From NCBI GenBank assembly GCA_047495785.1, contig JBLDXI010000003.1, forward strand, positions 992,001 to 1,056,000: a DNA stretch of 64,000 bases, written 5' to 3'. The DNA is from Lepidodermella squamata. Lineage: Eukaryota > Animalia > Gastrotricha. The translations under genes were made by a program, and so were the position numbers. The notes beneath the pieces are model-generated. The model did not search any database. It was not told where the DNA came from and was given only the letters and a program-made list of their open reading frames with translations. This document shows positions 3,383 to 30,961 of the stretch, one piece after another; position 1 is the stretch's first letter; every line of letters begins with the position of its first letter.

Positions 3383-6300
3383 TCACGTATGCTTTCCATT
3401 ATCAGCAAATGCACTGAATGGGCCATTCGACCCGCCCTGTATTGTTGGTTCTAGGTTGGCCCAATCCTCGGAATCATTATAACCATCTGCATTCCGATTA
3501 AAAGCTATTTCTTGAAAAGCCGGTGTCTGTACGGTTGTGTGAATTTGCATCTTATCCACAAACTCGATGCTCAACGATTGATCAAAGCCGTTAAAGCCGT
3601 TGTCGAGGGAGAACGTGGGTTCGACTGGGAAATTTGGAAAGCCGGCGATTCCATCGGGTGCGTTTGACTGCACGGGCTGGTGATCATCGCTAGCGCCAAG
3701 AAAGTTATTCGCTGATGAGCCATTTTCGTCGTCATCGCTGTCCGGCTGATTAGAATCCTCATTCTCAGCCATGAGCTCTTCTTCGTATTCCGCACTGACA
3801 GAATCTACAGTCATCCATCTTATAGATTTGTAATTCTCAGATCCTCTCGCTGCATAACTGTTCTTACTTCGATCAGAACTTTCCTTGTCGATTTCAGAAG
3901 TCAAATCTTTAACGCTTCGATTAGATGGCCAAAAGTACTTGAGGAAAGGAATATGCAAAATTGTGTATCCGAAAGTCGCACTGCCCATAGGTCGAAGCCA
4001 TTCGTTGTCCTTGTAAGTTTCCACTGTGACTACAGAGTCTCTTACAATGGTGTGACTAAAAACGCAGGATGGGTATAACAAAAACAAGGTAAATTATCAA
4101 TTCAAATTACGGTATAACAACTTGGCCACGTTCGCTTTGACTGAAGCGAGCCAGAAACTGAATTGAAATAAAATATTTAGAGTAACATGACGTAAAATTA
4201 TTGAATTTGCAACTGACCGTTCCAACACATTGCTTCACAAAGGCAGATTTACTATACGAGGGAGAAACAAATCCCGCGAATCCATCAGGCCAATAAGCTT
4301 TTAGCCAATCGGTGCATAGCAAATTCAAGGCATCATAGAACCATTCCCAAAAGCTGAAGGGTTTCTTGGGAGCTTTTTCAGGGTCAAAGTGTAGCTTCTC
4401 CCTTTTCACCAACATGTCCCAGCTGACAATTTCGTCGTCAAAGCAACGGCAAGAATCGTAAGGTAAGTCTTGCGGATGATCAGCGGAAGAAAAAAGACAT
4501 GGTGGACACGGCGTGGGGGCGAACATGCGTTCAGCCAAAAAGTGAACATTTTCTGGCTTCAGTCCGCTGCCAAGCCGATATGTCCAGAAACCATTCAAGA
4601 GACTTTTCACATCCTTCCATGAAGCGTCATTAGGTAGTGGAATTGGGTGCTGTCAAAGAATCGATAAAGAGTGTGATGTCTCATGCTCAATACTTATAAT
4701 TTCTTACCTGAATGTCAAAGAACAGTCGCATGATGGAAGGTATGTCGATGGGGAGATAATCGATTGATTGCAACACGGCATATCTTGTGAGCATTGTGTC
4801 TAGACGGATGTAGCTATCACTTTCGAGGCAAGAGCACATCCCACCCGAGTTAGTCGAATTCAATGGGCAAGGCACGAAAGGCTGGTCGGCGACCTGCATC
4901 GCCAGATAATGCCAGGTATCCTCAGTCAGCGGCTCTCGTCCAAGGCTACTCGAAGCGGCCGCAACGCATTGTTTGACATCTTTCCACTGGGCAACATTCA
5001 GACGTATGGGACTCTGTTGGGTTAAATAATCATAATTGGGCAAGATTCAAACGCCTGATAACGTACTATAGCAGAAAAATAGTTGCTCCATGCCACAGCG
5101 ATTTCGGAATTGGCTCTTTGAATGAAATTGGACGTTACAGAAATGGGAAGCGACACTGTACTGATGCTCCACGGCTCGGGAAAATGTTGCCATATAAAAA
5201 TTGGCAACTGTGAAGAGAGCGAAAACTGGATGCGCACCTTTTCCTCCACAACAGAATGTCCATCAGCCACCATTTGATTGTCTCCTAATTTTCGCTTGGC
5301 ACCTTTTTCCAGGCTTTCTATCCTCAGAAATTCAATTGCAGCCACGCAGTGGCCTAATGATGAAAGAGAAATTAATTTTAAATAATGCCCTAAAGTTTCT
5401 GCCCACCGGTCTCCGGTTTATAGACGAGCTCCATTGTTGTGCTTGGGTTAACCGTAAGGTGTGATGTTGGCAGCCAATCGTTGTCGTTTACTAGTTTGAT
5501 GCTAACCTTGAGGTTTTCTGCTTTTATCAACTGTTCAGCTACAGTTTTAGATTTTCTTTTCGGACGTGATGCACACGATGGAGAAGATTTGATGCCCAGC
5601 TGCTGTCTTGCATTTCGAAACATCTGGTACGAAGAGTCTAGCTGTAGATCGATCTTTAATTAACGAGAGCTAATTAAAATCTTCAAAAACATCCGAATTA
5701 TTACCGGAAATCGAGGAAGTGGCAAGAGAAAAGACGGTGAGCCGGCATATTTTTCGAATTCAGGGCGGAATATAACCGAAGGGCAGAGTAATCGAACTGT
5801 CGGAGCTGCAAAACGCGAGCCTGTTCTAGTAGTTTGAGAATGCCAGTTGGTAGCAAAGCCATTTTTCAAGAAAAAATCCGAGAAAATATGTTGGCATGTC
5901 ACGGCAAGTGCCCGCAATCGAGGGCCGAAATGCGGATCTCCCCATGCAGCTTTTGAGGCGAATTGAAACCTTGCTATATCTCTCTCCAATATTTGAGCAG
6001 CGGCGTCGTAAGCGCCTTGCAGATGGTCTAAATCAGTAGTTGGTACGATGCCGAATGAAATTTCAATTTTCTGACGTTCGAACAGTTTCATGTAGGCTGA
6101 AATGCTAGAAATCGTCCGTTGCACTGAAGGCATGTATTGCTCAGTTGCTGCATACAGATGCTGAGACATTGGGGGAACCGATCCTAAATTAGGTTGTAAG
6201 GCATCGGCAAGGCAGTAACTGGCGTGGCGCAGGGCATCAACGGCTGTTTCGAAGTTTTCGAATTTGATCTCAGGAGCTAAACGATCAGCAGCTCTGATTA

Positions 6301-6818
6301 AATGAGGTATTATTTGGCTTTGGAAAAACAGCTCGCTCTCATTTAGAAGTTGAATTTTCAACTTTATGAAGAAATCCATCGCCCCTTGAAGACTCAAAGC
6401 CTGAGGAAAAGACAAGGGTAATAGGTTAGTTTCGTATCTTAGGATGTCTACCGAAAGCTGGTCGACGCGATTCGAGCCATTCCTGCGCAGGACCTGGATT
6501 GCATCAGCTAGGAAATGGCGCACCTAAAACAGAATTTAATTGCACATATCACTGAGCGGTTGAAGACTCTTTTACGTCACTGTTGCACGGAAAAGCACCA
6601 TTGAATAGCAGCCTAAAAGGTAACGATAAGGTAGCTCTTTAGTATTTCATTTTTGGAGAATTGTCTCACCATGAGGTGCTGGTGGAGCTAATCCAGTCAG
6701 CTAAATCTAGCCGACGTTGCCAATCACCGCTTATCTCGTAAACTTGACTGATTAATAAGCCTTCAGCGCTGGAGTCTTGCTGAAGCCACAATTCCAATTG
6801 GGACTTACTCAGAGGCAT
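3383..6818 (-). CDS. STAT: Divergent STAT transcription factor, paralogue 1 (multi-exon)
   Basis: ATG 6818 (MPLSKSQLELW..RLDLADWI, N-domain); coiled coil; DBD VVEEK..TVSLPISVTSNFIQ..AWSNYFS; linker FSFWEWF; SH2 GFVS..FLARFSQSERG; tail Tyr in ENYKS; acidic C-terminus. Confidence 0.85.
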
Positions 6819-7049
6819 CCTGAGACTTTAGTTCATCAAAATTTAAGACGGCTGAAAAATGTGACTCTTCTAATAACTAATAGCTGTCGCATTTTTATAC
6901 CATGCGATAACACGCATTTACTTGGAAATGGAGCCGAGATTAGAAAGGAAGCGGCGTGGGTGTCGATTTTATAATTGTAATTGTGATAAAGTTTGAGATA
7001 AACGTCGCATTTACACGAGCTACTTCGTAATTATCGATGTTAATTACTT

Positions 7050-7465
7050 CATGAGACGTACTAGGACGCCGGGGCTACTATCTCCCCATACAAAATTCTC
7101 TGCGTCACGTGCCGGAATAATGCAAATGATTCACGTGACCGCGGACTAAACATAATAATTTAATGGCAAATTGAAAAATATTTATTTTAATTATTTTTGG
7201 TTATTTAATATTTTTTAAAGTGAAAATTAATTACAAGAACCGGCGCGCGAAACTCGGCGTTTTAGGTTCAGAGATGAAGATCGAGGTCTTGTGGTCGCTG
7301 CAAAAAGTTGATCTTTGCGTAAACACGTGCTTTTTGTGAATGAGATTTTTTGCTGATCGCTGCTAATGAGGTTATTTTTTGCCACCGTGACCTTCGGACC
7401 TCATTAAAAAATAACACGAAAAGCAGTCGTTTTATTCGAGCTCCGGCGTCCTAGTACGTCTCATG
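7050..7465. mobile_element. MITE with 8-bp TSD (hAT- or P-type)
   Basis: TIR CATGAGACGTACTAGGACGCCGG at both ends; TSD AATTACTT at 7042-7049 and 7466-7473. An uninterrupted inverted copy of the target repeat lies at ~10780-10865. Confidence 0.9.
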
Positions 7466-7555
7466 AATTACTTCGGCTGTTGCATCATCATTTTCACTTT
7501 AACTGAAACGAGCGCTGGTTTTTATTTTTGTGTGAAATTTTTAGGTTGTATGCGA

Positions 7556-7654
7556 AAAGAGCAAGCGAAATAAGAGCAATGATAAATGAGCAATGATATA
7601 AGAGCATAACGAGATGAGAGCAACGAGAAAAGAGCAGAACGACGAAAGAGCAAT
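7556..7654 (+). repeat. Degenerate tandem repeat (AAGAGCAA core)
   Basis: About 7 repeated GAGCA units. Confidence 0.6.
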
Positions 7655-7726
7655 CATTAATAATAAATAATGAAAAAATTATTTGATTTTTTGCTTAGGA
7701 TTGACAAGTGATTCTCGACCCATTAA

Positions 7727-8496
7727 CCCTTTCACGGCGGGAAGGCCGATTTGGAATTTCGACGTTGAAAATTCGCAGAAAATCGAATTTGATGCATTCT
7801 TGATCGCCATTTTAAGGAATATTGCTCTTCGATGTTGGCTACAAGGTTCTGAGACCAGAACACCGTTATCTTGCATGGTCAGGACATACTAGCAATTTTA
7901 AAATAGTCAACCTGAGATTGAAATTTCGATTTCTTTCAACTTGAAATTGTATAGGGTTCTGATCATTTTTTGATCCAACAAAAAAACCACCGTGTCCGCC
8001 ATAGTCTCATTGACCTCTGTGTAAATTTTTTAGAGTGGGAAAGAAAAAACGACGACGCTATTGATATTCAATCAAACCGGCCGAATTAGTCCTATCCGCC
8101 CGTACAGGCGGAGTGCGTGATTTTTGCGCTGCAAAAACTGTCGCGAGGAAGAACTGGAAAAGCTGAATTCAGATCTGAATGCTGAGCCTCTAAAACTTCT
8201 TTAAACTGAATGTTTTCGGCGATATAAGTGGGGAAGAATCTTAGGGACATTCATGGGAGTAATTTAGAATCTAAAATTCTAAAGCTGGAGGCATCTGACT
8301 CAGAAATTAGGGTGCTCGAAAAATCAGCTGAAATCAGCTGGGCGGATAGGACGATTTCGGCCAGTTTTCGTACAGCCTTAACGGTGATAGATAAAGACAA
8401 ACGGATTTCAAAATCGGGATCAGGGCCTTCGAAAACCCCTAGAACTGCCGTCAAATATTTTTTCTACCGCAGATAAATAATTCCGCCATGAAAGGG
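7727..8496. mobile_element. Non-autonomous piggyBac-type element
   Basis: TTAA|CCCTTTCACGGCGG...CCGCCATGAAAGGG|TTAA. Confidence 0.85.
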
Positions 8497-8523
8497 TTAA
8501 AAACGCGTATTTTGAGTAATTAA

Positions 8524-8925
8524 CCCTTAGCCGCCGAAGACGTGTACACGCGTTAATTCCGGAGAAAATTCACCGTGGTCGAAGGATTTGGGCTATCGAA
8601 CCCATTGTTGCGTCATAAATTATGATAAATCAATAGTAAGAAACAAGCACTCCCCGAAAATCCAAATTTTCCAAGCCATTCTGACCAGGTCGAAAATAGT
8701 GAGAAAATTTTTAAATGACTTGTTAACACGTCATGAAAACGCGTTAACACGTCATAGCAACGGCGACCCAGTTAAATTTCTTCTGAAAAAGAGGTTCGGC
8801 TTTCAATCTAAGGCTAAATGTAAGACTTTCTGCCGACTCAGAATTTGATTTTAGCCTCTTCTTGATTTTCTGGGATTTTCTGATAGGTGCTCGAGTTAAC
8901 ACGTCATTGCGCCGGCGGCTAAGGG
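8524..8925. mobile_element. Non-autonomous piggyBac-type MITE
   Basis: TTAA|CCCTTAGCCGCCG...CGGCGGCTAAGGG|TTAA; internal TTAACACGTCAT repeats. Confidence 0.88.
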
Positions 8926-8967
8926 TTAAAAAAAAACGTTCCAGAGCGCTGGGACTTTTTGAACACG

Positions 8968-11415
8968 CCCGTAGTTCAGTATTTCTGAATTTTAAAGTTT
9001 ACTGATTGCTTTGAAAAGCATAAGCTAAGTTATGTGTGTCATCTGGTGATAATTGATATATGGATCTATGGACATGCCTAAGTTGCGTTTTTTATGGTGT
9101 CCGGAAAGCTATTGTTCAACGCTGTGATCAATATTTCGGACACCTCCGCAACACAGAAATAACAATCAAGTAATTAGGCCGGAGCTGTCCGAGCTCGAGA
9201 GGCAAACAGTTAAGACTAATCACCCTCCAACTTGATTAGATTAAGCCTTGACAAATCGTGACATGGTTGTAATTAATTTACGACATAGCGCCATCTGACC
9301 CTCGTTAATTTATGACGACGTGCCATACGGTCACTTTGTAGCTAAACGTCGTGGGAAAGCCTTTTTTATTTCGTCGGCACGATCCGCGAAAATCGAGAGA
9401 AATATTGATTTTTTGACATTTTTCGAAATTCACCGAAAATTCTCAATTTTAACTGTCAAATGACGATTATTTTGAATCCAAACTTTTCAAAAAATCCGTA
9501 GTTCAATATTTCTGAATTTAAAGTTTAACGACTGCTTTGAAAAGCATAAGCTAAGTTATGTGTGTCATCTGGTCTTAATTGTCATAATTAGCCCGCGGAC
9601 ACCATAAAAAACGCAACTCTAACGTCGCATTTACACTAGACTACCCATAATTATCCAAGTTAATTACTTTTACTGTTGCGCAATCATTTTCACGAAAGAC
9701 TGAATGCGTTGTTTTATCCATTTTTAAAACAAGAATTGGAAAGATTTAGATTGGGAGCGAGTAAGGTCGTGAAGAAATATCAAGGTAAATTAGCTAGACT
9801 GAGGTCTATGCATGCCTAACACCTTGTTTTTAATTTGCTGTGAAAAGAAATTCGCATTTACGAATTTCCTGAGAAAAAGTAACCATAATTTGAAAGCTAA
9901 AGAAATATTATTTAAATCCGACACATCTAAATAGCGGATCAAAATTGGTGGAATAGTGGCGAAGGTTATATTCCAATATTATTCAAATAATTTAGGGAGG
10001 ATTTTTCATAAATATTAGAAAATTTAATGAAGCTCCTGCTTTGGTAACGAAACCCACAAAAGTCATTGGAAAATCTCGAAACTATCAATATTTTCTGATT
10101 TCTATATTTTCCCCGGTATTTTTTCGAATTACATCGTGTCCCAGAGGTTGCGCAACTATTTTGTAATAGGGGCACTTTTCGTAGGAAATTCAACTAATTT
10201 TAATAAATTAAACCTACAGAGTTTTATTCGCGATTTAACCGAAAAGTATTAAAAATTGATATAAAATTCTCCGAAGAAAGCCCGGAAAACCCCGATGGTA
10301 ACTGGTTCGGTAATTTTTAGTATTTTACCCGGTTGGACAAAATTTCTCCGAGGTGAAATGTTAAATCCCATTAACAAGTGGCATACTTGATTAATATTCG
10401 CGTGATTTTTCGAATTTTTCTTACATTTTTCTGGCCACGAGATGGGACTTGGTCTGATTTTAGTGGTTCTGAACCCGTGTTCGTGATATTCTTACTCATG
10501 GGAAACGCTGTACAATACAGGGTGGCTTGAACTGCCGCCGTGACGCGATTCGTTGCATACTTCATTTTAAGAGGATTTTGGCAACATTTAAGAATTTTTA
10601 TATTCTCGAAATTGATCATTTCTATTTACCAGCAGGAGAATTGTATAGATCAGGTGTCAGCCAACAATGTGATTGCGAAATCGCGATTACTTGATACCTC
10701 AAAATTTGAGTTTTAAATCACCTTGCTGTGACTTGTTAACAGCGCCCATAAAATTTGCACACAAAAATAAAAACAGCGCTCACTCGAGTTTAAGTACAAA
10801 TGATGACGCAACAACTGAAGTAATTAACATCGATAATTACGAAGTAGCTCGTGTAAATGCGACGTAAGTTGCGTTTTTTATGGTGTCCGAGAAGCTATTG
10901 TTCAACGCTGTGATCAATATTTCGGACACCTCCGCAACACAGAACTAACAATCAAGTAATTAGGCTGGAGCTGTCCGACCTCGAGAGGCAAACAGTTAAG
11001 ACTAATCACGCCCCTACTTGATTAGATTAAGCCTTGACAAATCGAGACATGGTTGTAATTAATTTACTCCATAGCGCCATCTGACCCTCGTTAATTTATG
11101 ACGACGTGCCATACGGTCAATTTTTAGCCAAAAGTCGTGGGTAAACCTTTTTTATTTCGTTGGCACGATTCGCGAAAATCGAGAGAAATATTGATTTTTT
11201 GAAATTTTTCGAAAATTACCGAAAATTCTCAATTTTAACTGTCAATTCGCGATTATTTTGAATCTAAACTTGTCAAAAAATCCGTAGTTCAATATTTCTG
11301 AATTTAAAGTTTAACGATTGCTTTGAAAAGCATAAGCTAAGTTATGTGTCATCTGGTGTTGATTGATAAATGGATCTATGGACATGCCTAGCACCTTGTT
11401 TTTAATTTGCTGTGA
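8968..11415. repeat. Nested direct/inverted repeat complex of one non-autonomous element family
   Basis: 9081-9572 recurs at 10867-11356. AGTTGCGTTTTTTATGGTGTCCG is inverted at ~9596-9618. The block CCGTAGTTCAATATTTCTGAATT..GCTAAGTTATGTG occurs 3 times. Confidence 0.75.
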
Positions 11416-11444
11416 GCGAATTCCTCTTCACGGTAGATGGTGAC

Positions 11445-12155
11445 ATGCGCCGAGATTTTGCGCCCAGCGTGTTTGCGCCCACAAAAATGCGCCCCGACTT
11501 TTACGCCCTTACAGTATGCGCCCTGACATATGCGCCCCGACCTTTGCGCCCAGTGTTCTTTCCAATGGCAACTGTTTCATGGTGCTCATATCTTCGAGAT
11601 GTTAGTTAATTTCATGTTACCATGGAGGAGTACAATTTTGAAAGGTAAACGTTTTCTCCACTACATGGCATACCTGCGGTTGACCTCCTAAAATTCTGGA
11701 AAAATATCTAAAAAATATCTTGGCTCCTGTAGAATAAAGCTATCGATTTTGTTTTCCCGGATTCGATTCCATTATTGACTGCTGATTTTTTGGAATCGAA
11801 CCTTCGATAACCCTAAAATCACCTCTCTGGATCCCTTCACCTGGGTGGTAATTTATTAAACTGAAAGGTCTAATACAAAAGTCATAAAATGACTGCGTTT
11901 TCCATTAATGAGCACGCTTGAAGGTGCATCGACTTTTCGCCAACACAGAACTATAGAATAAGAAAATAATTTTCAGGTATATCTTCTTTAATCACAGATC
12001 AGGTATTTGGTGAACAGCCAGTTCATATTAGGATTATATGATTAGGAGAACACAGTTTTCTTCCAAAAAACAAATCTCGGGGCGCAAGTGTCAGGGCGCA
12101 ATTGTCAGGGCGTAAAAATACTGGGTTCAAAACTCCGGGCGCAAATGTCAAGGCT
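11445..12155. mobile_element. Foldback-like element with inverted arrays of TGCGCCC units
   Basis: About 7 GCGCCC units at 11445-11552; inverted GGGCGCAA units at 12078-12150. TSD not resolved. Confidence 0.55.
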
Positions 12156-12996
12156 TGACTGAAATGATAGAAGAAGCTTTCGTGATGACGCAACTGCGAC
12201 TTAAGCCGACATGAAACCAAAACCAAGGAGATTTTCGAATGATGATTTCCCACTTCCAAGAGAATGCCAGCCGCTTATATTTTGCGGTTGTGTCGATCAA
12301 ACACCGAATACGGCGAATCCCATAGTGTTGATGGGCGATGGGCGATGGTCATTTGCAAAATCGGTAATCGTGAGCGATTCTGAAAATGGTATCTTCGTTG
12401 CCGTATTATTAGGAGATTATAAACAGCGCGGTGATAAAATCGGCGAAGTTAGTTGTAGAGTACGCATTGAGACCACCGGAATCGTGGAGACGCCTCAAAT
12501 CGATATTGGGATTTAGAGAGCTCTGATGTTGTTGCTGAAAGGTATTCCGTGTTTATGTTTGAGCCCGAGACCGATTTCGGCCCGGACGCGGCCGGGTAAA
12601 AGCACTTTACCACTTCGCGCTCCGTCTATAACGTGCCCGTATGCGAATTTTACTGTAAGGAACAAATTCGATAGATACTCGGACCGCCAGGTTTGGGCTA
12701 GGACTTGATACATTTATCGGGTAGGGCAATGACTGTAGGTTGACCCAAGCCCGGCGGCCCGAGTGCGGCGCTGAGCAATAGCGCTGGTTCCCATTGTTCC
12801 CCGGCGTGCTCGGGCTAACACCGTGTGCAGTGAAGCGGGCATGTTTGAAAGCAGCCCGAACGCGGAGCGGCAAATCAATGTTACCCGTCTGCGTACCGGC
12901 CGGCTTGAACGCCTGAACGCAGAATTCGGACTCGGACCCCAACATTTTCGAAAATGTTTGAATGATTCATTATTTGTGAAATAAGTACCCGAAACT

Positions 12997-13211
12997 ACAG
13001 CATAAAGGCCGCATCATGAAAAGTGGCCGGTGACTCCAATAATCACCGCACCTGCCAGCGATTAGCAGTCGCCATCAATGAGACACCTGGGGTGACGCCA
13101 AGTAGGTAGGTTATCCGCGCTGCTTAGCGGATAGTAAAATCCTCGCGCTGACTACATACTTATACCTTTCTCGAAAATCAGGAAAATTAATCGCTGCGGC
13201 CTCTATGCTGT
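12997..13211. mobile_element. Possible small MITE
   Basis: ACAGCATAAAGGCCGCA and TGCGGCCTCTATGCTGT form inverted ends. Confidence 0.45.
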
Positions 13212-13625
13212 TGTTAACAGTCAAAATAATTTACCCTTCGATTTATATGCGAAGAGTAAAAATATTCTTTCTGATTTTCGATTTTTCGAGAATCACATGA
13301 ATATTACATGAATTTCAGCACGAATTTCTCAACGATTTTCAGTGCTCCCCGATATATGCAACCCCGCTGTCTGCCCACCCCGTTATTAGCCATCGAAACC
13401 CTGCTAAATAAAGTAGAATTTTTACTTCAATAATTAAACAAATTAAGTGTGAAAAATTAGTAAAAAATGTATTAGATTGACTCTCTTTCGAAGGGTTTCT
13501 GTCGCGTTTTTGCCAATTCTCGACTCTGAATTATTAAGATCGTCCTAATCGCATTCAGCTATCGAAATGATTGCAAGATTATTTGGAAATAAACGGCGAG
13601 CAAAAAAGCGAACAGCGCGATAGCG

Positions 13626-13695
13626 CGACCTCACCATCTCACGACCTCACCATCTCACGACCTCACCACCGCACCACCACACCACCGCCACCGTC
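13626..13695 (+). repeat. Minisatellite (CGACCTCACCATCTCA x~3) and CAC-rich tract
   Basis: Direct inspection. Confidence 0.7.
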
Positions 13696-13724
13696 TAAAC
13701 ATGCAAGTACTGCACACATGATGG

Positions 13725-14631
13725 CTAGCAATAAATAATTGAGGATGATTCATCTAGGTCACCCTGCAAACCCGGACTAGTATTATCTCTCTCCAATATT
13801 TGAGCAGCGGCATAATATGCGCCTTGCAGATGGTCTAAATCAGCGGTTGGTACGATGCCGGAAGAAATTTCAATTTTTTGACGTTCGAACAGTTTCATAT
13901 AGGCTGTAATGCTGCAGATTGTCCGGTGCACCAAAGGCATGTATTGTCCGGTTGCTGCCATCAGCTGCTGAGTCATTGGACGAACCGATCCTAATGGCAC
14001 ATTGGGTTCGATGGCATTAGCAAGGCGACAGCTGGCGCGACCTAGCGCATCAACGGCTGTTTCGAAATTTTCGAATTGGACCTCTGGAGCTGCACCATCT
14101 ACATCTCTGATTAAATGAGGTCTTATTAGGCTCTCGAAATACAGATTGCTCTCTTTTAGAAGTTGGCTGTTCAATTTGCTGAGGAACGCCAGCGCCCCTT
14201 GCTCGTCCAAAGCCTGAAAAATACGTGGGTAATACATTGTTTCCGTATTTTATCGAAGGTTTTCTACCGAAAGCTGGTCTACGCGATCCGAGCCATTCCT
14301 GTGCAAGACCTCGATTGCATCGTCTAGGAAATGACGTACCTAAAACAGACTGATTGCACACAGCATTGACTGGTGGGAGATTCTCTTACCTCATGGTAGC
14401 GCAGAATGTCACTATAGAACAACAGCCTTAAGTAACAATAAGGTAACGCTTTCAGTTTTCCATTTTCAGAGATATGTCTCACCATGAGGTGCTGGTGGAG
14501 CTAATCCAGTCAGCTAAAGCTATTCGACGGTGCAACTCCTCGCTACTCTCATAAACTTGGTCGATTAATAAACCTTCAGTGCTGGTATTTCGCTGAAGCC
14601 ACCATTCCAATTGGGACTTGCTCAGAGGCAT
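13725..14631 (-). pseudogene. STAT: 3'-truncated STAT paralogue 2 (N-domain plus coiled coil only)
   Basis: Highly similar to 26847-27694. Homology stops at ~13783 after QILERD; the frame then reads ~19 unrelated codons to a stop at 13725. Confidence 0.8.
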
Positions 14632-15562
14632 TTAATACTATAGTTCTTTAATATTTTACGACGGCTGAATTCACAGAAAAAAATATGACCGTTCTTATAT
14701 AATCGTCAAAGAGCGATAAAATGTATTTTCTTGGAAATCGAGCCGCAATAAGATAGGAAGCAGCGGGGGTGATTTGCAAATAGTGATAAAATTCAAGATA
14801 AAGAGCCGGAGAAATGTTAGCCCATTCATAATCGAAAAAGCTCATCTTTATTCCTTTATTGTCTCAATTCAGTGTTATATGTGGTTAGGTAAAGAACAAA
14901 ACGGAACATATAATGCTTCACAGTGTTGCGCAATGTGCTAAATGCACGTAATAAAACAGAGACTTTAGCGCTAATTTTGTTAGAGGTCGCGCACTAAATT
15001 TGAAAGTCGTTCCTACGAATCCTATTTAAGACTAAATAAGCAACAGTACCTTTTTTGTGGATAGGAATGTAATCTATGGCCGCTCTAGCGACGCCTCTGG
15101 AGAGCAGTTACTTTGAGGATCAGCCAATCGACATGAGGCCACCTAATTCTTACTCCCTTTTCCCAAGATCATCAATCAACCATCGTTTTTTCACACTTGG
15201 ATGCTACACATTTAGCTGTAATGTTAATCCGCCGCTGATCGCATGCAGGGTCTGGGAGGTAAAAGGTCAAACGATGCCTGTGTTTAAAAAATGTGCGCAT
15301 GTGCAAACTTTTTAATATTCTTGAAGCTGGCGTTCGGTGGTGAAGCCACGATTTTAGACCAGATTTGTTTCCGTCCACAGTACGGATTTTTTCGGAGTAG
15401 TACAGTTGTTTCGCTAGTTTTCATAGGCGGTAGGCGGTAGATTCGGCTTAACGCGTTTTCAATGATCTGATCGGCTTCGGTTGACTGATTCAGCTTGATA
15501 AAATAGGCTAACTTTAACTACTATTCGGTAGATACTATCATTGCTCGGGTTATATGCGCATA

Positions 15563-17880: not shown

Positions 17881-20344
17881 TCAGGATGGTTTAAAGCGTA
17901 AAAGTTTGCCATCAACGCAATTGATGCGCACCGTCTGGGGCGGTCCTTGCATAGGGAAGCCTTTTTGAATAACTGAGAAGTAATGGTCTGTACCATTGAA
18001 GCCCAAGTGTATCTGTTTCACGTTGCTCAGAGACGACCCAAACGCTGGGAAAACGTGCGTTGTGTGGTAGGTGTGGACCAAAACGTCCACTTGATATACA
18101 CGGGCAAAGGCGACCAAGGTATCGTTATCACCCCATGTGTCTGGATCGTCGCCTTTCCACGTACTCGCCAATTGAAACACTGAAAATATAAGGGCTGGTC
18201 AGTGCAAATTCACATTTATTCGTGGTGAAACAATACCTCGGTTTCCGAAGTCAGCAAGAATGGCCTCGCGATCACCATCGACAGGTAATCCGCCCGCGTC
18301 CATCGTTCCAGCGAACTCGTCCGGGTTGTCAAGCATGTAAGTTAAGACGGCTGTTTTGATTTCTTCAGCTAATTCGAAGTCTCCCTCCAACTGGTGGCTG
18401 AGTGCATAGAATTGGCATCCACTGTAAGAAATAAATTATCGGAATTCCCTCACGTCGCCCTCGTTAATATCTGGCTTACCCGTTACTCGGAACGTCGATA
18501 AGTGTAAGATCGAACGGACTCAGGCGCTTTCGTAACAGCCTTAATCTTTCGAGGCCGTTAGGAATAACCGGCTTACTGCCATTCTCTGGCTTCTTATTAG
18601 GTTTCGGCAAGCTGACAGGAGTAGCGGTAATGGCGATCGGCTGTGAGCTCTTATAAACCCATAGGCTGGCAGGTGTATCTCTCTTGCTGCTTGTGGTAGC
18701 GTTACTGCGAGATTTCGGTCCAGGTTTGCCCTTGGCGGGCCTTCCAGGGCCTCTCTTGCTAATTGGCGTGTCTTGACACAGGTCAATGCTCATAGAGTCT
18801 CCTATATCCTGCAGTGATTGATCGGGGCTTGGCGGGCGCTTACGCTGTTTGACTTTCTCCAGGTCTTCTACGGATATGCTGGTACCTGGCTCGAGGCGCA
18901 CGGCTGTTCCTCTGCCCCTTTTGACAGCCGGCTTGTCGGTTGCCATACATCGCTTCAGATGTTCCAGAATTGCCCGACCCACCTCAGTCTGAGCGAGTTG
19001 TTCCTTAGATTTCGGCAAGTCATAGGTCATAGCTACAGTCAACTTCACACCATCCGAACTAATCTTGACATCAGGAACGAGAACCGCTACGTCTTCAGGT
19101 GACTCACAAGGTAGAATTTCAACATCAGCCAGCGGCTTTACCGGAAGTCGTGATAAAGCCCGACCCATATTGACAGGCCAAATCCCGCATGCATCAAAGC
19201 CGGCGACAATATTTTTCATTCGACCTTTCTTCATGCCCTGGTCATAGGTGACAGCTTTGACTAGCTTGGACAACAGGACAGGAAAATCACATTTTGCTAG
19301 GGATTTTTGCGATCGATTCTCTAGCTTCCAGTTCAGCAGAATTGTCCGCCACTCCTTTTTCAAGGGGCCGAAAAAGGCGACGTCCAGGGGTTGGCAGACA
19401 CTGGTAGCATTAGGCGGCAGCAAAACGAAGCTGATGTCATGGTTTTCACACTCTTCAATGACTTTAAAGGAGATATGGCTCGACAGGTTATCGCCGATCA
19501 GAACCTTTTTTCCAGTACCTGTTTTCAGATAGGGCAACGCCACATTTAGGAACCAATCTTCAAACGTCGGCATCTCGAACCAACCACTTTTACTAATTGA
19601 GAAGCGAGTTTTAGGAGGAGCGCCTTCAGCCCAGCTAGGTCTCAACACTCTTTTACTCCGATAACAGACGTATGTCGGGAGCATCGTCCCATCTGCAGCG
19701 CCGCTAAACATCAGCGAAATGCTACCCTTCGTTGAGTTCAGAATCCTACCCGGTCGCTTTATGCGTCGACGAAACACAAAATGCTTCCGGCCTGGGTCAT
19801 CCGTTAAGTTGGTTTCGTCGTAATTAACGATATAGTGAGGGTCGGCATCTGCCAGCGTTTCGCGTAGGTTAACAAAAAAAGACTCAAGAGTCGTGCGAGA
19901 CAGCTCGGCCTTTGCGGTTGAAATGTTCGAAGCAAATCGTGGCTTAATAGCATCCTTATGTCTTTCGAGAAATGAATAGTACCAGTCGTATCCAGGTTTG
20001 TTATTGTGGAATTCCGACACCTTTATTCCACGCGATTTAAGGTAAGACTCAACCACGCAACGAATGTCATCCCGATTCAACGGGAAACCAAAGTCACCCA
20101 ACATTGACACGTACTTTACCAGGGCTAACTCGACGTCGTCAGCAAGGGCACGCGGATGTCCAGCATAACCGATCTGGGGTGTTCGATAGTGGCGATACAA
20201 GGTGGTTTTTGGTATTCCCGTTTCAGAAGCAACAGAGGCGAATGGCTTCCCATCTTTCAACTGAACCAAAGCGCGTTTTAAGTCAGTCGGCGTGTAATCA
20301 CGACAACTTCGTCGGGTCTTCTTCGCGGTATACTTGCGGACCAT
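17881..20344 (-). CDS. pogo/CENP-B-like transposase (HTH_psq, CENPB HTH, DDE_1, AT-hook-like) fused by splicing to a C-terminal OTU cysteine protease; 782 aa
   Basis: Exons 20344-18480, 18421-18237, 18179-17881. Triad NYDET / GDNLSSH / QPLD with 35-residue spacing. OTU Cys box DVPSNGGCQFYALSHQL, WGD motif, His box HLGFNGTDHYFSV. Confidence 0.88.
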
Positions 20345-20448
20345 GTCAATCGCTTAAATGTCACCAGGCAATTTTTAATAACCCTATTTCCAAAGAAAAA
20401 TTGAATAGACGTAAACATCTCGGACTCGTTATTGCACAGACTCGACCC

Positions 20449-22420: not shown

Positions 22421-22592
22421 TCGGTGCTAAAAAGGATCGATTTAGAAAGGAATTAAACAAACAAATTTGCCAAACGATTTTTTAATTGCAACAAAATTAT
22501 TTGAATCAGACACCATTGCGTGGTTAGGTATTTTATCCAGATTTCGAGCAGAAAATGGGTTTTTCTTCGGAAAATAACCAAACATGTGGGGA

Positions 22593-22707
22593 GAGGAATC
22601 CTCAACGGTGTGGAGGGCAAAACCTCGATTTCAGCCCTTGAAAATACCCCCGCGACGCCCTCGGGCATTTTCACATTTCTGCCCTCAACACCGTTAAGAA
22701 TTTCTTA
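22593..22707. mobile_element. Small MITE/hairpin
   Basis: AGGAATCCTCAACGGTGTGGAGGGCAAAA and TTTCTGCCCTCAACACCGTTAAGAATTTCT are inverted. Confidence 0.6.
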
Positions 22708-22714
22708 ATTTAAG

Positions 22715-23093
22715 CAATGGGGGTTCTATTCCGGCAATCAAAAGCGATGAAACGATTAAATATCTTGGCGTCACTTTCCATGATGAAAGTGTGTTCGACG
22801 AAGCAGCCGTCATCTCCGACCTGAAGGAACAACTAGAACTGCTAGCAAATTCGAATCTATCACTAGCAGACCCAATATTTTCTATTTTAATTAACTCAGT
22901 TCATCGGGCCAAAGCTTATTTATCCGTTTCAAACGGCGCCAATTAAAGCGAGGAAAACATTTTTGGAATCCGTTGACGTCATTATGCGTAGCGTCGTTGA
23001 AGAATGCGTCGGTTTTCCTACAAGCAGGCCCACTAGCTTCTTCTATGCAGCTCGTAAACATCGTGACCTTGGCCTTCCGAAAGCTACTTTATG
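22715..23093 (+). mobile_element. Non-LTR retrotransposon RT/thumb fragment (R2/NeSL-like)
   Basis: IKYLGVTF..LKEQLELLANSNL..PKLIYPF..LESVDVIMRSVVEECVGFP..SFFYAARKHRDLGLP, frameshifted. Confidence 0.75.
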
Positions 23094-24111
23094 AGAAAAA
23101 AGTAAATGAGAATGAAGAAACGTCTTTGTTTGTTTCTATTTCCGGTATCTGAGGATACAAGAAATGCGTGTATCCACTTTTATTTGAGCAATGACATGCG
23201 ATAAGTCAGCTTCACCGCAAATCTAAAGGATCAATTTTCATGATGAATCTGCGGTGATTGTGCAACCATGGTTTATTGCTCGCAAACGACATGTGAATCA
23301 TGGCGGAACAGGGCTATTTCGTGCAATGTATAGCGATAATGTGCGCGAACGACAGGGCGTACGGTGCATGAGAAGTCTACCCAAGGAAACCCCAAAAACC
23401 AAAAAGGGCATTTTGCCTGATAAATTCGGGACCGACTACACGCGGAAGCAACGCCAGCTCGTGGATCCTACTTCGAACACGGTGGCTATGCATTCTATGA
23501 GTAATAGCCAATCCACTTTTTACGCTGGATCTTTGACAAAACCATTTGGGCTGCACAGAAACTTTTTAAGAAGCCTAACCAACCAGGAGAGCCATTTTTC
23601 CTTCATTGGAGTTACATCTAGCTGATTCCGGCCTTGGGACCGATTCTAAGCATAGTTTTGGAAGGCCTTACATTGCCCTCAGGAAGAAGACTGTACGCTT
23701 GTCCACTGACGAATTCTACTAAGAAATGAGAAACGAGAACTTCGATTGAAGCCAGAACGGTCTTGTCAAAGATCCACCTTAAAAAGTGGATTGGCGATTC
23801 TGCAATTGTAAATTTCCGCAGAAAAAGGATTGGTGGGATCTGGGATACATTCTGGCTTCTATCAAAGGTAACGTTTCTAAATACATATACATTTCATGTA
23901 AAACATGAATTTTTTATTGCATTTATCCATGGAAGTAAAAGGATAATGACTTTCACAGACACAAATATAACCGAACCGGGTCAAGAGAATAATATGATAT
24001 AAGGCAATCTCTTATTCGCTTCAAGTATTACCGAAGCAATAATCAACCACATAAGAAACATTTAACCGATTTCTTAGGTTCTTAGGAAATAATGATCAAT
24101 GATTTCATCAA

Positions 24112-27100
24112 TCAAGACAGTCCATCGTACTTCTGCACTCCATTAGTAGCAAATGCACTGAATGGGCCATTCCAGCCGGCCGGTAATGTTGGTTCTAGGC
24201 CTGCCCAATCCTCGGCATCATTATAATCATCTGCATTCCGATTGAAAGCTATTTCTTGAAAAGCCGGTGTCTGTACGGTTGTGTGAATTTGCATCTTATC
24301 CACAAACGCGCTTATCAACGATAGATCAAAGCCGTTAATACTGTTGTCAGGAAACAAAGTGGATTCGCCTGAGAAATTCGAAAAACCGCCTATACCATCG
24401 GTGGCGTTTGGCTGCAAGGGCTGATGATCCTCGCTGGCGCCATGAAAGTTATTCGCTGATGAGCCATTTTCGTCGTCATCGCTGTCCGGCTGATTGGAAT
24501 CCTCATTCTCGGCCATGAGCTCTTCTTCGTATTCCGCACTGACAGAATCTACAGCCATCCATCTTATAGATTTGTAATTCTCAGATCCTCTCGCTGCATA
24601 ACTGTTCTTACTTCGATCAGCTCTTTCCTTGTCGATTTCAGCAGTCAAATCTTTAACGCTTCGATTAGATGGCCAAAAGTACTTGAGGAAAGGAATACGC
24701 AAAATTGTGTATCCGAAAGTTGCACTGCCCATAGGTCGAAGCCATTCGTTGTCCTTGTAAGTTTCCACTGTGACTACAGAGTCTCTTACAATGGTGTGAC
24801 TAAAAACGCAGGATGGGTATAACAAAAACAAGGTAAATTATCAATTCAAATTACGGTATAACAACTTGGCCACGTTCGCTTTGACTGAAGCGAGCCAGAA
24901 ACTGAATTGAAATAAAATATTTAGAGTAACATGACGGACAATTATTGAATTTGCAACTGACCGTTCCAACACGTTTCTTCACAAAGGCAGATTTACTATA
25001 CGAGTGAGAAACAAATCCCGCGAATCCATCAGGCCAATAAGCTTTCAGCCAATCGGTGCATAGCAAATTCAAGGCATCATAGAACCATGCCCAAAAGCTG
25101 AAGGGTTCCTTGGGAGCTTTTCCAGCGTCAAAGTAAAGCTTCCCACTTTTCACCAACATGTCCCAGCTAATGATTTCGTCGTCAAAGCAAAGGCAAGAAT
25201 CGTAAGGTAAATCTTGCGGATGATTAGCGGCAGAAAAAGGGCATGGTGGACACGGCGTGGGTGCGAACATACGTTCAGCCAAAAAGTGTATATTTTCTGG
25301 CTTCAGTCCGCTGCCAAGCCGATATGTCCAGAACCCATTCAAGAGACGTTTCACATCCTTCCACGAAGCCTCATTAGGTAGCGGGATAGGTTGCTGTCAA
25401 AGAATTCAAAAAGAGTACAATATCTGATGAACAATTTCATTATAATATTACCTGAATGTCAAAGAAGATTCGCATGATGGTAGGCATGCAGAATGGGAGA
25501 AAATCGTTTGACTGCAACATTTCATATCTCGAAAGAATTGTATCTAAACGGACGTAACTATCGTTTTCGAAGCAGGAACACTTCACACCCGAGTGAGTTG
25601 AGTTCAATGGACATGATCTCATAGGTTGGTTGGCGACCTGTATCGCTAAATAATGCCAGGTAGCCTCTGTCAGCGGTTCTCGTCCAAGGCTACTCCAAGC
25701 GGCCTCAACGCTGTGTTTGACTTCTTTCCACTTGGCAACATTCAACCGTAAGGGACTCTGATAGTTAGATTATTAGGGCAGGTAAGATTAAAATGCCTGA
25801 CAACGTACATTTGCTGCAAAATAATTGCCCCAAGCCACAGCGATATCAGCATCAATTCGCTGACTGGGATGCACTATTAGAGAAATAGGTAGCGATACTG
25901 TGCTGATACTCCACGGCTCTGGGAATTGTTGCCATATGAAAATTGGCAGTTGTGAAGAGAATGAAAACTGGAGGCACAGCTTTTTCTCAACAACAGAATG
26001 TCCATCTTTAGCCGCCATTTGGTCGCCTTCCAATTTTCGCTTGGCACCTTTTTTCTTCTTTCCATCCTCCGTCTTTTCTATTCGAAGATATTCAACTGCA
26101 GCCACGCAGTGACCTAATGATGAGAGGCAAACAAATGAATTCATAACGAGGATGAAACATTCCTACCGGTTTCCGGTTTGTAGACAAGAACAGTTTCCAT
26201 TTTAGTGACGAAGTTGTTCACTTCCACCTTAAATTGCGATGTTGGCAGCCGATCGTCGTCGTTTACCAGGTTGATGATAACCTTGACGTTTTCTGCTTTT
26301 ATCCATGGTTCTACTTCAGCTTTAGCTTGCTTTGCCGGGCGTGACGCAACACTTTCTGCGTCATCGCTCTCAGGCAAAACTGATGTGTTTGTCTTATCGT
26401 AGTTGGCCGGCAAGAAACGCGCATTACGCTCGATAGAACAGGCTTTGATGCCGAGCTGACGCCATGCGTTTTGAAGAAACTGGTACGAAGAGTCTAGCAA
26501 CTGTAGATCGATCTGTAATTAACGAGAGCTTATTGACAATTCTTTAACAGCTTCACAATTATTACCGGAAATCGGGGAACTGGCAGGAGAAAAGACGGTG
26601 TTTTACCGCCGGCATGTTTTACCGATTGTGGACGGAAAATGACCGACGGGCAGAGTAATCGAACTGACGGAGCTGGAAAACGGGCGGCGCTCGTTCTAGC
26701 TATTTGAGGATGCCAGTTGGTGACAAGGCCATTTTTCACAAAGAAATCGATGAAAATATGCTGGCACGTGACGGCTAGCGCCTGCAATTTTCGGCCAAAG
26801 TTTTGGTCCATCCATGCGACTTGAGCGGCGAAGTGGAGTCTTGCTACATCTCTCTCCAATATTTGAGCAGCGGCATCATATGCGCCCTGAAGATGGTCTA
26901 AATCAGTGGTTGGTACCCTGCCAAATGAAATTTCAATTTTTTGACGTTCGAACAGTCTCATGTAGGCTGTAATGCTACAGATTGTCCGGTGCACGAAAGG
27001 CATGTATTGTCGGGTTGCTGCCATCAGCTGCTGAGTTATTGGATGAACCGACCCTAATGGCACATTGGGTTCGATGGCATTAGCAAGGCGACAGCTGGCG

Positions 27101-27694
27101 CGACCTAGCGCATCAACGGCTGTTTCGAAGTTTTCGAATTGGACCTCTGGAGCTGCACCATCTACATCTCTGATTAAATGAGGTCTTATTAGGCTCTCGA
27201 AATACAGATTGCTCTCTTTTAGAAGTTGGCTTTTTAACTTGCTGAGGAACGTCAACGCCCCTTGCTCATCCAAAGCCTGAAAAAAGACATGGGTAATACT
27301 TTTTTTTCGTATAGATCTCAGGTTTACTACCGAAAGCTGGTCAACGTATTTCGAGCCATTCCTGTGCAAGACCTCAATTGCATCGTTTAGGAAATGACGC
27401 ACCTAAAACAGACTGATTGCACACTGCATTGACTGGTGGGAGATTCTCTTACCTCATGGTAGCACAGAATATCACCATAGAACAACAGCCTTAAGTAACA
27501 ATAAGGTAACGCTTTCAGTTTTCCATTTTTAGAGAAATGTCTCACCATGAGCTGCTGGTGGAGCTAATCCAGTCAGCTAAAGCTATTCGACGTTGCAACT
27601 CCCCGCTACTCTCATAAACTATGTCAATTAATAAACCTTCAGTGCTGGTATTTTGCTGAAGCCACCATTCCAATTGTGACTTGTTCAGAGGCAT
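24112..27694 (-). CDS. STAT: Divergent STAT paralogue 3 (multi-exon)
   Basis: Same exon structure as paralogue 1; DBD TVSLPISLIVHPSQ..AWGNYFA; SH2 FLARFS; tail Tyr in ENYKS. Confidence 0.87.
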
Positions 27695-27868
27695 CTAAGA
27701 CTTTAGTTCTTCAATGATACGACGGCTGAAATTACATAAAAAATTTGATTCTTCTAATAACCGCCATAGGATTTATACCTAGAACGATAACATGTATTTC
27801 CTTGGAAATCGAGCCGCGATAAGGAAGGATTCCTTTCTTATCGCGGCTGGTAGCAGCGGGGGTGTCGA

Positions 27869-27980
27869 TGGCGTTCGCGTAATAATGCTCTGGGTGAGCT
27901 GAAAATAGCTAAAAAAGTAGCTAAAATGCATGCAAAAAGTAGCAACGCTATTTTAAAAGAGTATTATTACGCGAATGCCC
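27869..27980. mobile_element. Small MITE upstream of STAT paralogue 3
   Basis: GGCGTTCGCGTAATAATGCTCT and AGAGTATTATTACGCGAATGCC are inverted; absent from the equivalent upstream region of paralogue 2. Confidence 0.65.
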
Positions 27981-28195
27981 TGTACTTGAGATAATTCATG
28001 GGAGAACTTTGAGCTGATTCATAATCCAAAAAAGCTCATTTCTATTTTTTTATTGTTTCAATTCTAGAGGTAACATATCGGTGATTGTGTCGGTTAACTG
28101 TGTTTAGTTGAAGAACAAAACGAAACGCGTTAGAGTCCGCAATGGGTAGGTTGATCTGAGCAAATCGAAACTGGTGTTCTTTATCAATTGAATGG

Positions 28196-30961
28196 TCATT
28201 GCATTTCGTTATCGCTGGTGTCGCTTTCGTCAACGCCTATCCAGCGCAGTGGCTTGTAACCTTCCTCGCCCTGTGGCTTGGGGTTAATCGTTACTAAGTT
28301 GAGGCTGAGAACTCTTGTTAGGATATCCTTTTTCGGGTACATAGATGGCCACCAGCATTCTAGCGGCTTGACATCGATGATTCTCTGTGCAAAAAGTTTG
28401 ACATCCTGGCTAGGTTGGATAGTACGATCCTTGAATGCCTTTACCAGTAAGACATTATTCGATGAAAGCATGCAATACCTAAGGCCGAAAGGATATTAAA
28501 CAGATCATGTTTGATGTAATTTCTTACGGAAAGGCGATTTGCCCCAAGTCATTCAGGCTAAATCTAAGAACAAACTACAGAGAAATATATAGTTAACAGT
28601 TAAAATGAGATAAAAACACGACTCACAGCGCCCGGGTGGCTATGAACCAAAGCACTCTCGCAATACTGCTGGGAAACAAATCCCAACAGCAATTCAGGCC
28701 AGAAAGGCTTCAGCAATGGACTACTGACTAGTTTGACGTAGGAAAAAAACCATTCCCAAAAACTAAATTTGAGCAAATCTGGTTGTCTTGGCTTGGCATT
28801 CGAACCTTGGTGAGGTCTCGCCTTCAACCTGTCCTTAGTTAGCTTTTTCCACGAGACAGCTACGCTGTCGTAACAGCTGCATGCTGAAGCATTTAAATTG
28901 GTATTAGCGAACGCAAATGGGCAAGACTGGCGCTCTTCCCCAAACAGCCGCTCAGCCAGCAGATGGATATTCTCAGGCTTCAGTCCAGAACCACAAGCCC
29001 AGTTCCAGTAGCTATTAAGCATGCATTTCACGTCCCGCCAGTAGGCAGTTTCAGGAACACGAAAGGACGGGGAGCGTGCCTACAAATCAAAAAATCGAAA
29101 AAAATCCTTTAAAATCTATAGTCTCTCTTACGATCTTGGAAAAATAGTTATCCCATAAGATCGTCACAGTTGCATTTGAAATCTGATTGTTATGCACAGT
29201 TACAACGATTGGCAAAGATAAGGTTCTCGCGAGTGCACGGCTATTTGGATTGGACGATGGGTTGGGTTGCGGCAGGAAAACTTCAGACAACGCTATGGTA
29301 CTCTCGAACACTAGGCAAATCTTTTCTTCAACAACTCGATGCTGAGTTCTCGCGCTTGCGCTTGTTGATGCTTCACTACCAGATGTAGCGCGTTCCCGTT
29401 TGTAGTTCTTCAAGTAAAGCTTATCCAAAGCTGCAACACAACGGTTTTTGGCAGGGTGGTATACCCAGTTGGAGGTTTTGATGTGCTGTCCTCTAGTCGA
29501 GTTTTCATCTTTTGAGACCGTTGATTCGTCGCAATAGTAAACTTGCACATTAGCATTCGTTGCCATGATCCATTTTTCCCCGTTTCCAGCATTCCGCTTC
29601 GCTGACGAAGCCATCCTCCGCAAAGGTTGACTAGCATTTGAGGACGAGGCTGAGTTTAAGCTCAATTCTAGGACACCCTGAGCTGACTCTTTTTTAGCAA
29701 GAAACTCGCAATCTAGCTTGAAATTTGCTTCGACGAATTGAGAAGTAATCAAATTTGAGTGATGAACTCCTAAACTCCTGGTGGTGTAACTTGTAACACC
29801 TTCGTCAATCTGAGAAAATAGAACAGTGCAAATAATTCTAATCAGGTTGTAATCGCAATCAAATTACGGAAGATATTGGCCATTGAAAAAGCGGACCGAG
29901 CTCAAGCTGTGATAAAGAGCTGGCATAGTACTGATGCAAGAGGTTTTCACGGCAAAAGATCAAGCTAGGGCATAGCATCCGAACGACAGGTGTGATGGAA
30001 AAACGACACTTATTTTCAGAAGATATCTTGCGAACAATTTGTGCCATCTGCTCCTCCAGAAGCATGCACTTGTTCACCAAGAAGTTCCTTAGAAAATCAA
30101 GTAGCACGTTAATTAGATCCCTCAAGGAAGCAGCCATTTCCGCTAAGTTGTGATCCGCGGCAAAGTGTAGCCCCAGTTCCAGCCTTGGCAAGGTTTTCGA
30201 GACGGTCTGGGCTACAGCGTCATAAGCCCCTTGCAAATGATCAGCGCTAGTCGTTACTAGCTCAGCGAAGGTCAAACGTGCTATTTGCCTATTAAATAGG
30301 TGCATATAGTTTGTGAATGTCGTGCGGCATGCCGAGATAGCAAGCTTCATGTCCTCCGCGCAAGTTGTAATTCCTATCCTGATGCGGTCAAGGCTACTAG
30401 CGTCGAAGAATCGGCCGCCCATGGTGATATCGCTGAGAACTACAGCAACGTGGAAGCTGGATTGGACAAAGCTTTCCGTCGCATTTTCAAAGTTCGTATC
30501 AGTGAAGGCTCTCATTGGTTCATCAACAGCGGATAGGAAGCTTGGATTCACAAAATACTTATCGTACTCATTGCTTTCAATTAGCAGACAGTGGCGTAAG
30601 GCTGTCAGGTAAGAAGAGGATTTCGTTTCATCAGCCAGCAAGTTCTTGAGTGAAATAACCAATTTTGTTTCGAAATTAAAAATTATTTAGGTCAATTTAC
30701 CTCGAATGATCGAATGATAGAGTAATGTCTCGAATTGTTCTCATCACCAGATAGAAAGTTGATCGCCCTCTGAATCACAGTCCTTGACTGTGAAACTGTC
30801 TGCCCACTGATTCTAAACCAGTTATCGCCATGAATAGTGATCCAAGGTGCGAGAGCTATCCTAGGCTCCAAATTTAGCCCATTCTGTGCGTATATACCTT
30901 CCAACACATGTTTGTTTGAGCTATTGTGCCATAAATTCAATTGAAAGCCGTCGATAGGCAT
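28196..30961 (-). CDS. STAT: STAT paralogue 4, most canonical (STAT5/6-like DBD), very short C-tail
   Basis: ATG 30961; DBD VVEEKICLVFES..TLSLPIVVTVHNNQISNATVTILWDNYFS; FSFWEWF; SH2 GFVSQQ..FVLRFSLNDLG; GYKP phosphotyrosine-type motif. Confidence 0.92.

Follow-up and report, generated by a model that had tools for sequence, protein, structure and literature searches.

A window of 64,000 nucleotides from the gastrotrich Lepidodermella squamata (contig C3:992001-1056000; GC content about 42%) was analyzed for an array of STAT genes, and the genome of the animal (121.2 Mb in 151 contigs) was searched for further members of the family. Translation of the minus strand combined with intron tracing revealed four co-oriented STAT-derived units between position 3383 of the window, the stop end of gene A, and position 30961, the start ATG of gene D. 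These units are the complete genes A, C, and D and a 5' fragment named B; the introns of the STAT genes in the array are 49-60 nt long, all with GT-AG borders. Gene D (28196-30961, minus strand) comprises six exons (30961-30701, 30644-29868, 29809-29132, 29079-28627, 28574-28528, and 28478-28196) with open frames, separated by GT-AG introns of 49-58 nt, and encodes 832 amino acids in conventional domain order, with 19 residues following the tail tyrosine. Gene C (24112-27694, minus strand) consists of ten exons (27694-27546, 27489-27453, 27402-27331, 27276-26566, 26512-26167, 26113-25809, 25757-25452, 25393-24962, 24901-24855, and 24799-24112) coding for 1030 amino acids. The stop codon of D and the start of C are 501 bp apart, and all five introns of D are found at the same positions as introns of C. 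For gene A (3383-6818, minus strand; 981 amino acids), the borders of the ten exons (6818-6670, 6612-6576, 6523-6452, 6400-5705, 5653-5407, 5353-5067, 5013-4708, 4649-4218, 4157-4111, and 4055-3383) were transferred from C by alignment. A and C possess a long acidic tail past the tyrosine, whereas the tail of D is short and not acidic. Fragment B (13785-14631, minus strand) contains exons 1-3 (14631-14483, 14426-14390, and 14339-14268), followed by 429 nt from the start of exon 4 (14213-13785).

Self-comparison of the DNA yielded identities of 78-85% for A and C, about 90% for B and C, and 77.5% for B and A. Searches and fold predictions were run exon by exon; codon columns of the per-exon alignments were pooled for the substitution counts alone. 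A preceding sequence-only reading had described four co-oriented STAT genes in this interval, three of them retaining the SH2 arginine and the tail tyrosine while diverging strongly elsewhere. The gene models bear out the four co-oriented units; three are complete genes, but the second copy, B, turned out to be a truncated 5' fragment. Arginine and tyrosine are present in A, C, and D after splicing, and the strong divergence was seen as well: the protein of D is 24-41% identical to those of A and C, and A and C share 65-100% identity per exon, with the exception of the 12-codon exon 2 (42%). The copies have kept their introns and were therefore generated by duplication of DNA and not as retrocopies. 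We regard the array as probably a real tandem cluster of STAT genes, created by duplication at the DNA level within the lineage to which this animal belongs.

The hallmarks of a STAT protein are the STAT_int domain, the STAT_alpha coiled coil, the STAT_bind and STAT_linker domains, an SH2 domain with an invariant arginine, and a tail tyrosine which becomes phosphorylated. In the array, the SH2 motif is not visible in the raw open reading frames because a short in-frame intron interrupts it; the spliced motif reads GT/FLARFS in A and C and GA/FVLRFS in D (the slash marks the intron). The arginine codon is located at 4146-4148 in A, 24890-24892 in C, and 28563-28565 in D, and the codon of the tail tyrosine at 3830-3832, 24574-24576, and 28256-28258, respectively, all on the minus strand. 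This tyrosine lies 86-87 residues past the arginine in all three proteins, within the motif Y-K-S/P-I/L-R-W, and aligns with the canonical phosphotyrosine (pTyr), GY(I/V)K, of arthropod and other reference STATs; it is the predicted phosphorylation site of A, C, and D.

Furthermore, the exons were compared with Pfam models, known structures, and protein collections. The STAT_linker model (cut-off 27 bits) was matched by D with 34.3 bits and by A with 27.4 bits, C remaining just under the cut-off with 25.6 bits; a six-frame scan of the genome with this model gave scores of 32-35 bits. STAT_bind (cut-off 27 bits) was matched by D with 29.7 bits, C scored below the cut-off with 13.7 bits, and A gave no match. 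The DNA-binding exons of A and C align to those of D and of E, a paralog on another contig, with 33-38% identity (E 1e-8 to 1e-11). Among PDB sequences, the top matches of the linker-SH2 exon were STAT5B for C and STAT6 and STAT5B for D; the flanking exon could be matched to the beginning of the SH2 domain in STAT5B and STAT6. A profile of the linker-SH2 exon from six paralogs recovered 381 proteins at E<=1e-3 from 1.84 billion representatives. The ten best matches were looked up; of the eight that were named, seven bear the name STAT or can be read as such, and the remaining one carries the label of a HEAT-repeat protein. Two sturgeon proteins labelled as contaminant, which stood high in the match list, were rejected as relatives, since they read as vertebrate STAT models that had been joined together or that contain internal repeats. 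For exon 4 of C, AlphaFold predicted a helical bundle, which superposes on the coiled-coil domain of STAT2 with a Z-score of 12.8 and a root-mean-square deviation of 2.5 Å over 136 residues, all other STATs reaching Z-scores of 10-12. A, B, and D have a first exon homologous to exon 1 of E, and E scores 21.8 bits on STAT_int (E 2.7e-4; cut-off 26), under the cut-off. In A, C, and D, the N-terminal exon is tied to the STATs solely via this paralog. Judged by sequence, A, C, and D are members of the STAT family.

Over the 5' two thirds of the genes, A and C are 75-80% identical. A sliding profile revealed a tract of 600 bp with 96-99% identity (C 24519-25118; A 3775-4374; minus strand), which runs from the end of exon 8 across introns 8 and 9 and exon 9 (SH2 arginine) into the initial portion of exon 10, where the tail tyrosine is encoded. 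Introns 8 and 9 are 97-100% identical as compared to 58-81% for introns 1-7, and the synonymous divergence (dS) is 0.145 in exons 8-10 as compared to 0.49 in exons 1-7. The tract looks like the product of gene conversion, which is the simplest reading; it amounts to concerted evolution of the SH2-tyrosine module, introns included.

A and C also contain a second, diverged linker domain, encoded by exon 7 (A 4708-5013; C 25452-25757; minus strand). This exon has 306 nt in both genes and is in phase 0-0, so that skipping it would preserve the reading frame. An hhalign comparison of exon 7 from A, C, and G, a further STAT gene of the genome, with the linker part of exon 8 from A, C, G, D, and E gave a probability of 97.6% (E 3e-12), and exon 7 of C matched the Pfam STAT_linker model weakly (E 0.017). 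G carries the second linker in the part matching exon 7; the arrangement as an exon of its own is that of A and C. Among the 150 best STAT representatives, two linker matches were found only in two chimeric sturgeon gene models. The second linker was presumably gained in the branch leading to A, C, and G.

Several results weigh against reading A, C, and D as STATs of the usual kind. Their Pfam scores are near or below the cut-offs. None of their exons matched STAT_alpha in Pfam; the model of exon 4 of C is of middling confidence (predicted local distance difference test, pLDDT, 59.7), and syntaxin-type and other unrelated helical bundles score as well with it as the STATs do. Exon 1 of D gave no Pfam match to STAT_int, exon 1 of A and C not having been scanned separately, and a profile of the N-terminal exons recovered no STAT from the PDB. 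D and E have a DNA-contact loop which we take to be of the STAT5/6 type (SLPIVVTVHN.Q ... LWDNYF). This loop, SLPxVVxVH, is changed in C and further changed in A, so DNA binding by A and C may be changed or lost. Finally, the genome was checked for JAK, as the sequence-only reading had proposed. FERM_F1 and FERM_F2 gave no match, and the JAK SH2_1 and Jak1_Phl models gave sub-threshold matches only. With these four Pfam models no JAK-specific domain over the cut-off was detected in the genome, in what is a weak test, carried out exon-wise with mostly vertebrate-built models and without a positive control.

Candidates for JAK were rejected on inspection: the SH2_1 matches on contigs C28 and C2 belong to an ordinary SH2 exon, which has phospholipase C exons next to it, and to a zinc-finger gene, and an adjacent pair of kinase domains on C19 represents Ser/Thr kinases. 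Additionally, at least 143 tyrosine-kinase Pfam matches were noted among 891 first-look candidates. Many of them lie in tandem clusters (C30:1.29-1.34 Mb; C46:0.40-0.42 Mb; C29:3.73-3.76 Mb; C24:1.14-1.23 and 5.17-5.19 Mb; C31:0.85-0.96 Mb), which look like a large kinase expansion.

A, C, and D could be real genes and still not encode tyrosine-activated activators: D and B, the latter with an N-terminal domain and half a coiled coil, could then be decoys or dominant-negative partners, and A and C, with their doubled linker and changed loops, could act non-canonically or independently of phosphorylation and JAK, a role proposed for STAT-like proteins of nematodes. The short tail of D, the long acidic tails of A and C, the altered DNA-contact loops of the latter two, and the failure to detect a JAK-specific domain agree with this explanation, as do the STAT-like genes of C. 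elegans, which exist without a JAK (PMC13203501; PMC5587905). However, the SH2 arginine and the tail tyrosine motif are kept in all three genes, and homogenization of the SH2-tyrosine module in A and C would be hard to explain if the contact between pTyr and SH2 were unused. We consider this explanation unlikely.

Invertebrates usually have a single STAT gene or few of them. Six-frame searches of the L. squamata genome revealed at least six STAT loci, a number to be taken as a lower bound: A, C, D, G, E, and F. G is located on the same contig as the array (C3:4.44 Mb) and has an open frame of 698 amino acids. Homology searches with this frame and with exon 4 of C returned no protein, under length limits that make these blanks uninformative. 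E (contig C74) is the most conventional one, with the motif GTFLLRFSS and a STAT_linker score of 60 bits, and F (contig C45) forms a long branch outside the clade of A, C, D, G, and E. A weak STAT_linker match on C48 was matched by none of the STAT exons of the genome and was not counted. The reading frame of G ends shortly past SH2, and just upstream of G (L001:1807-2046, plus strand) a protein stretch 55% identical to the C-terminal tail of C was observed, possibly left over from a further member of the array.

A maximum-likelihood tree was calculated from the linker-SH2 exon (61 rows, 124 columns). It placed the array genes apart from 55 other STATs in the arrangement (E, P0001) + (D, (G, (A, C))) with a support of 100/99, so that A, C, D, and G form a clade with the genome's own E. 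This supports a lineage-specific STAT radiation, which had been suggested from the sequence beforehand. P0001 is an open reading frame from a metagenome with 47-56% identity to E, and no further STAT was found beside it in the 21 kb examined of its 53.7-kb contig. Because P0001 groups with E, the split of E from the branch of D, G, A, and C is older than the split of the two species. The duplication that gave rise to the branch of A, C, D, and G seems to predate the separation from this nearest database relative, and the recent duplications seem to be those of A, B, and C only. Orthologs of A, C, D, and G were not found among the 1.84 billion protein representatives; an exon alignment of A, C, G, and D gave only two matches, of 21-25% identity, in the JGI metagenomes and none in a prokaryote genome collection.

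The same tree could be obtained if A, C, D, and G were old paralogs shared with other phyla, too diverged to be recognized there, and if their clade with E were due to long-branch attraction. Such attraction possibly aided the clade: the branches, at 0.5-0.8 changes per site, are long, the tree was built from a single exon with 124 columns, and the grouping of P0001, an E-type gene of another species, with E means that the split is not recent. Yet the 1.84 billion representatives include no protein nearer to A, C, D, or G than the ordinary STATs, the five introns of D share their positions with introns of C, D adjoins C, and G lies on the same contig. Shared old paralogs are therefore improbable, and an origin of the array by duplication in the lineage of this animal remains the reading we prefer.

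Comparison of A and C revealed ten open exons out of ten, with all splice sites GT-AG and kept. At least seven exonic indels were found, all of them multiples of three; of five intron length differences, four are not multiples of three. The ratio of nonsynonymous to synonymous divergence (dN/dS), pooled over 978 codons, was 0.39 with a 95% bootstrap interval of 0.32-0.46, at a dS of 0.34. Values per exon ranged from 0.25 to 0.56; the exceptions are exon 2, which has 12 codons (1.11), and exon 9, which is identical in both genes. A, C, and D are under purifying, though relaxed, selection. Whether copies 1 and 3, i.e., A and C, evolve neutrally had been set as a test beforehand; the dN/dS of 0.39 indicates purifying selection instead. 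The weak Pfam scores and the truncation of B would fit an array of decaying, neutrally evolving pseudogenes, with only the conventional STATs elsewhere in the genome at work, and a pairwise dN/dS alone cannot prove constraint on both A and C. However, the frames of A, C, and D are open over 832-1030 codons in 6-10 exons, and neutral decay of A and C is refuted by these open frames together with the kept splice sites, the in-frame indels, and the dN/dS with its upper bound of 0.46, which makes the pseudogene explanation very improbable. An artifact of assembly or whole-genome amplification, suggested by the probable origin of the source assembly from multiple-displacement-amplified DNA, which is prone to chimeras (PMC11660948), can practically be dismissed, since amplification chimeras would be identical, whereas differences of about 5-25%, together with indels, separate the copies over most of their length; moreover, the spacers hold different repeats and the exon structure is coherent.

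Homology upstream of fragment B extends to about position 14771. The frame of B is open and its splice sites are kept; DNA-binding, linker, and SH2 parts are missing. B and C differ at 44 positions in 228 codons with a dN/dS of 0.39, too few differences to separate a young pseudogene from a gene for a short N-terminal protein. The homology stops at 13784/13785, inside the coiled-coil exon and exactly at the end of a repeated element (12700-13784, no strand assigned), the terminus of which abuts the breakpoint. This element has 88 matches in the genome, and several of them end at the exact base that abuts B. Full copies of about 2.2 kb (C15:1653142-1655392 and C25:216207-218449) carry an inverted copy of the terminal 125-130 nt or so about 2 kb away. 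Beside B, one terminus only is present, the second one not being found in the window, and no 3' remnant of B was detected in the spacers. Hence, either a transposon-linked rearrangement removed the 3' part of B, or B was no more than a partial copy from the outset.

The spacer between B and C contains an open reading frame of 622 amino acids for a pogo-type DDE transposase (18476-20344, minus strand; Pfam DDE_1, 62 bits), and a Pfam scan of ten spacer open reading frames gave no match. A and B are separated by a spacer containing a direct repeat (9079-9581 and 10865-11365) that is about 500 bp long and 93.6% identical. A second direct repeat of 1667 bp and 99.94% identity (39676-41342 and 43336-45002) lies within a duplicated unit of receptor and unknown genes. 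Family-C receptor genes, encoding a ligand-binding domain and seven helices and 28-45% identical to each other, adjoin both D (32055-34723, plus strand) and E (L002:1890-4262, minus strand); the pairs of receptor and STAT gene may represent an old segmental duplication, with differing orientation. A Protein Atlas search with the receptor gene next to the array yielded clusters rich in diatoms, of no taxonomic value, and the mitochondrial COX1 gene is absent from the assembly. Elsewhere in the genome, three very similar loci for cytosolic HSP90 were noted (C10:2.62 Mb, minus strand; C10:2.68 Mb, plus strand; C68:15 kb, plus strand), two of which form an inverted pair about 60 kb apart.

For a real tandem STAT cluster, the following course of events would account for these data. 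D and the ancestor of A and C probably arose by an old tandem duplication from the conventional STAT of the genome, E on C74, and the branch of A, C, and G would then have acquired the second linker domain. The split of A and C is recent (dS about 0.5); B, probably younger still, would be an incomplete duplicate of C that breaks off where a transposon-like repeat ends, and transposons would later have spread the copies apart. Each protein would be latent until its tail tyrosine is phosphorylated; the SH2 domain of a partner would bind the phosphorylated tyrosine, and the dimer would bind DNA via its Ig-like DNA-binding domain. With SH2-tyrosine modules kept near-identical through conversion, A and C could pair with each other, and with DNA-binding loops that differ, their targets may differ.

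A more far-reaching combination of these points would make the doubled-linker proteins A, C, and G a new class of STATs. The additional linker would alter the spacing between the DNA-binding and SH2 domains and with it the sites bound by dimers, exon 7 of A and C could be skipped, activation would proceed without JAK through members of the genome's large tyrosine-kinase repertoire, and conversion would keep the SH2-tyrosine modules matched for pairing of paralogs. As a whole, we regard this combination as speculative and rather doubtful.

Tandem and partial duplications of STAT genes with fast divergence were described for nematodes, mosquitoes, fish, and mammals (PMC3670131). A single STAT is known from the fly and two are known from Ciona (PMC3296744); in flatworms, which one paper places near the gastrotrichs (PMC6468455), STAT was reportedly not detected (PMC13203501). 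The STAT genes of L. squamata share with invertebrate STAT5/6-like proteins (Drosophila Stat92E; Nilaparvata lugens STAT5B, P0013) the presence of the SH2 motif GTFLxRFS, an aligned pTyr, and, in D and E, the type of DNA-contact loop. They differ from these proteins by an identity of only about 30%, by Pfam scores near or under the cut-offs, by the second linker of A, C, and G, by the changed DNA-contact loops of A and C, and by a number of six genes as compared to one in the fly. Nematode STATs (C. elegans F58E6.1 and the partial tandem copies of sta-1; Wang and Levy 2012, PMC3670131) likewise show duplication within a lineage, fast divergence, partial tandem copies beside the parent gene, and no recognized JAK. 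In contrast, an N-terminal exon with homology to the one of E, itself a weak match to STAT_int, is retained in the gastrotrich genes, whereas the nematode STATs are described there as matching the mammalian domains only partly; furthermore, copies are more numerous here, and a doubled linker is absent from that description.

Tandem local duplication together with conversion of a segment is also known from vertebrate STAT clusters, where adjacent mammalian STAT5 genes, STAT5A and STAT5B, contain a converted segment (Liongue et al. 2012, PMC3296744). The array is an independent, spiralian event and shows much greater divergence beyond the converted SH2 segment. Anopheles gambiae has a pair of STATs, the extra one being linked to an expanded set of immune genes (PMC3670131); the mosquito copy is an intronless retrocopy, whereas the gastrotrich copies keep their introns. 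An immune role of the array, raised in the sequence-only reading, is an analogy only.

Tandem duplication, fast divergence, and partial copies are well described for STATs, and the array is a further case of this known process. New are the doubled linker and the finding that a gastrotrich possesses six genes of this family. The array consists of four STAT-derived units, is young, and has an SH2-tyrosine module evolving in concert; the doubled linker is found in three genes. These genes would provide a natural test of the effect of linker length on STAT dimers on DNA. The array also makes a case for asking which kinase drives STATs where JAK is not seen. As the six-gene set of this gastrotrich shows, the STAT family can grow and alter its build outside the vertebrates.

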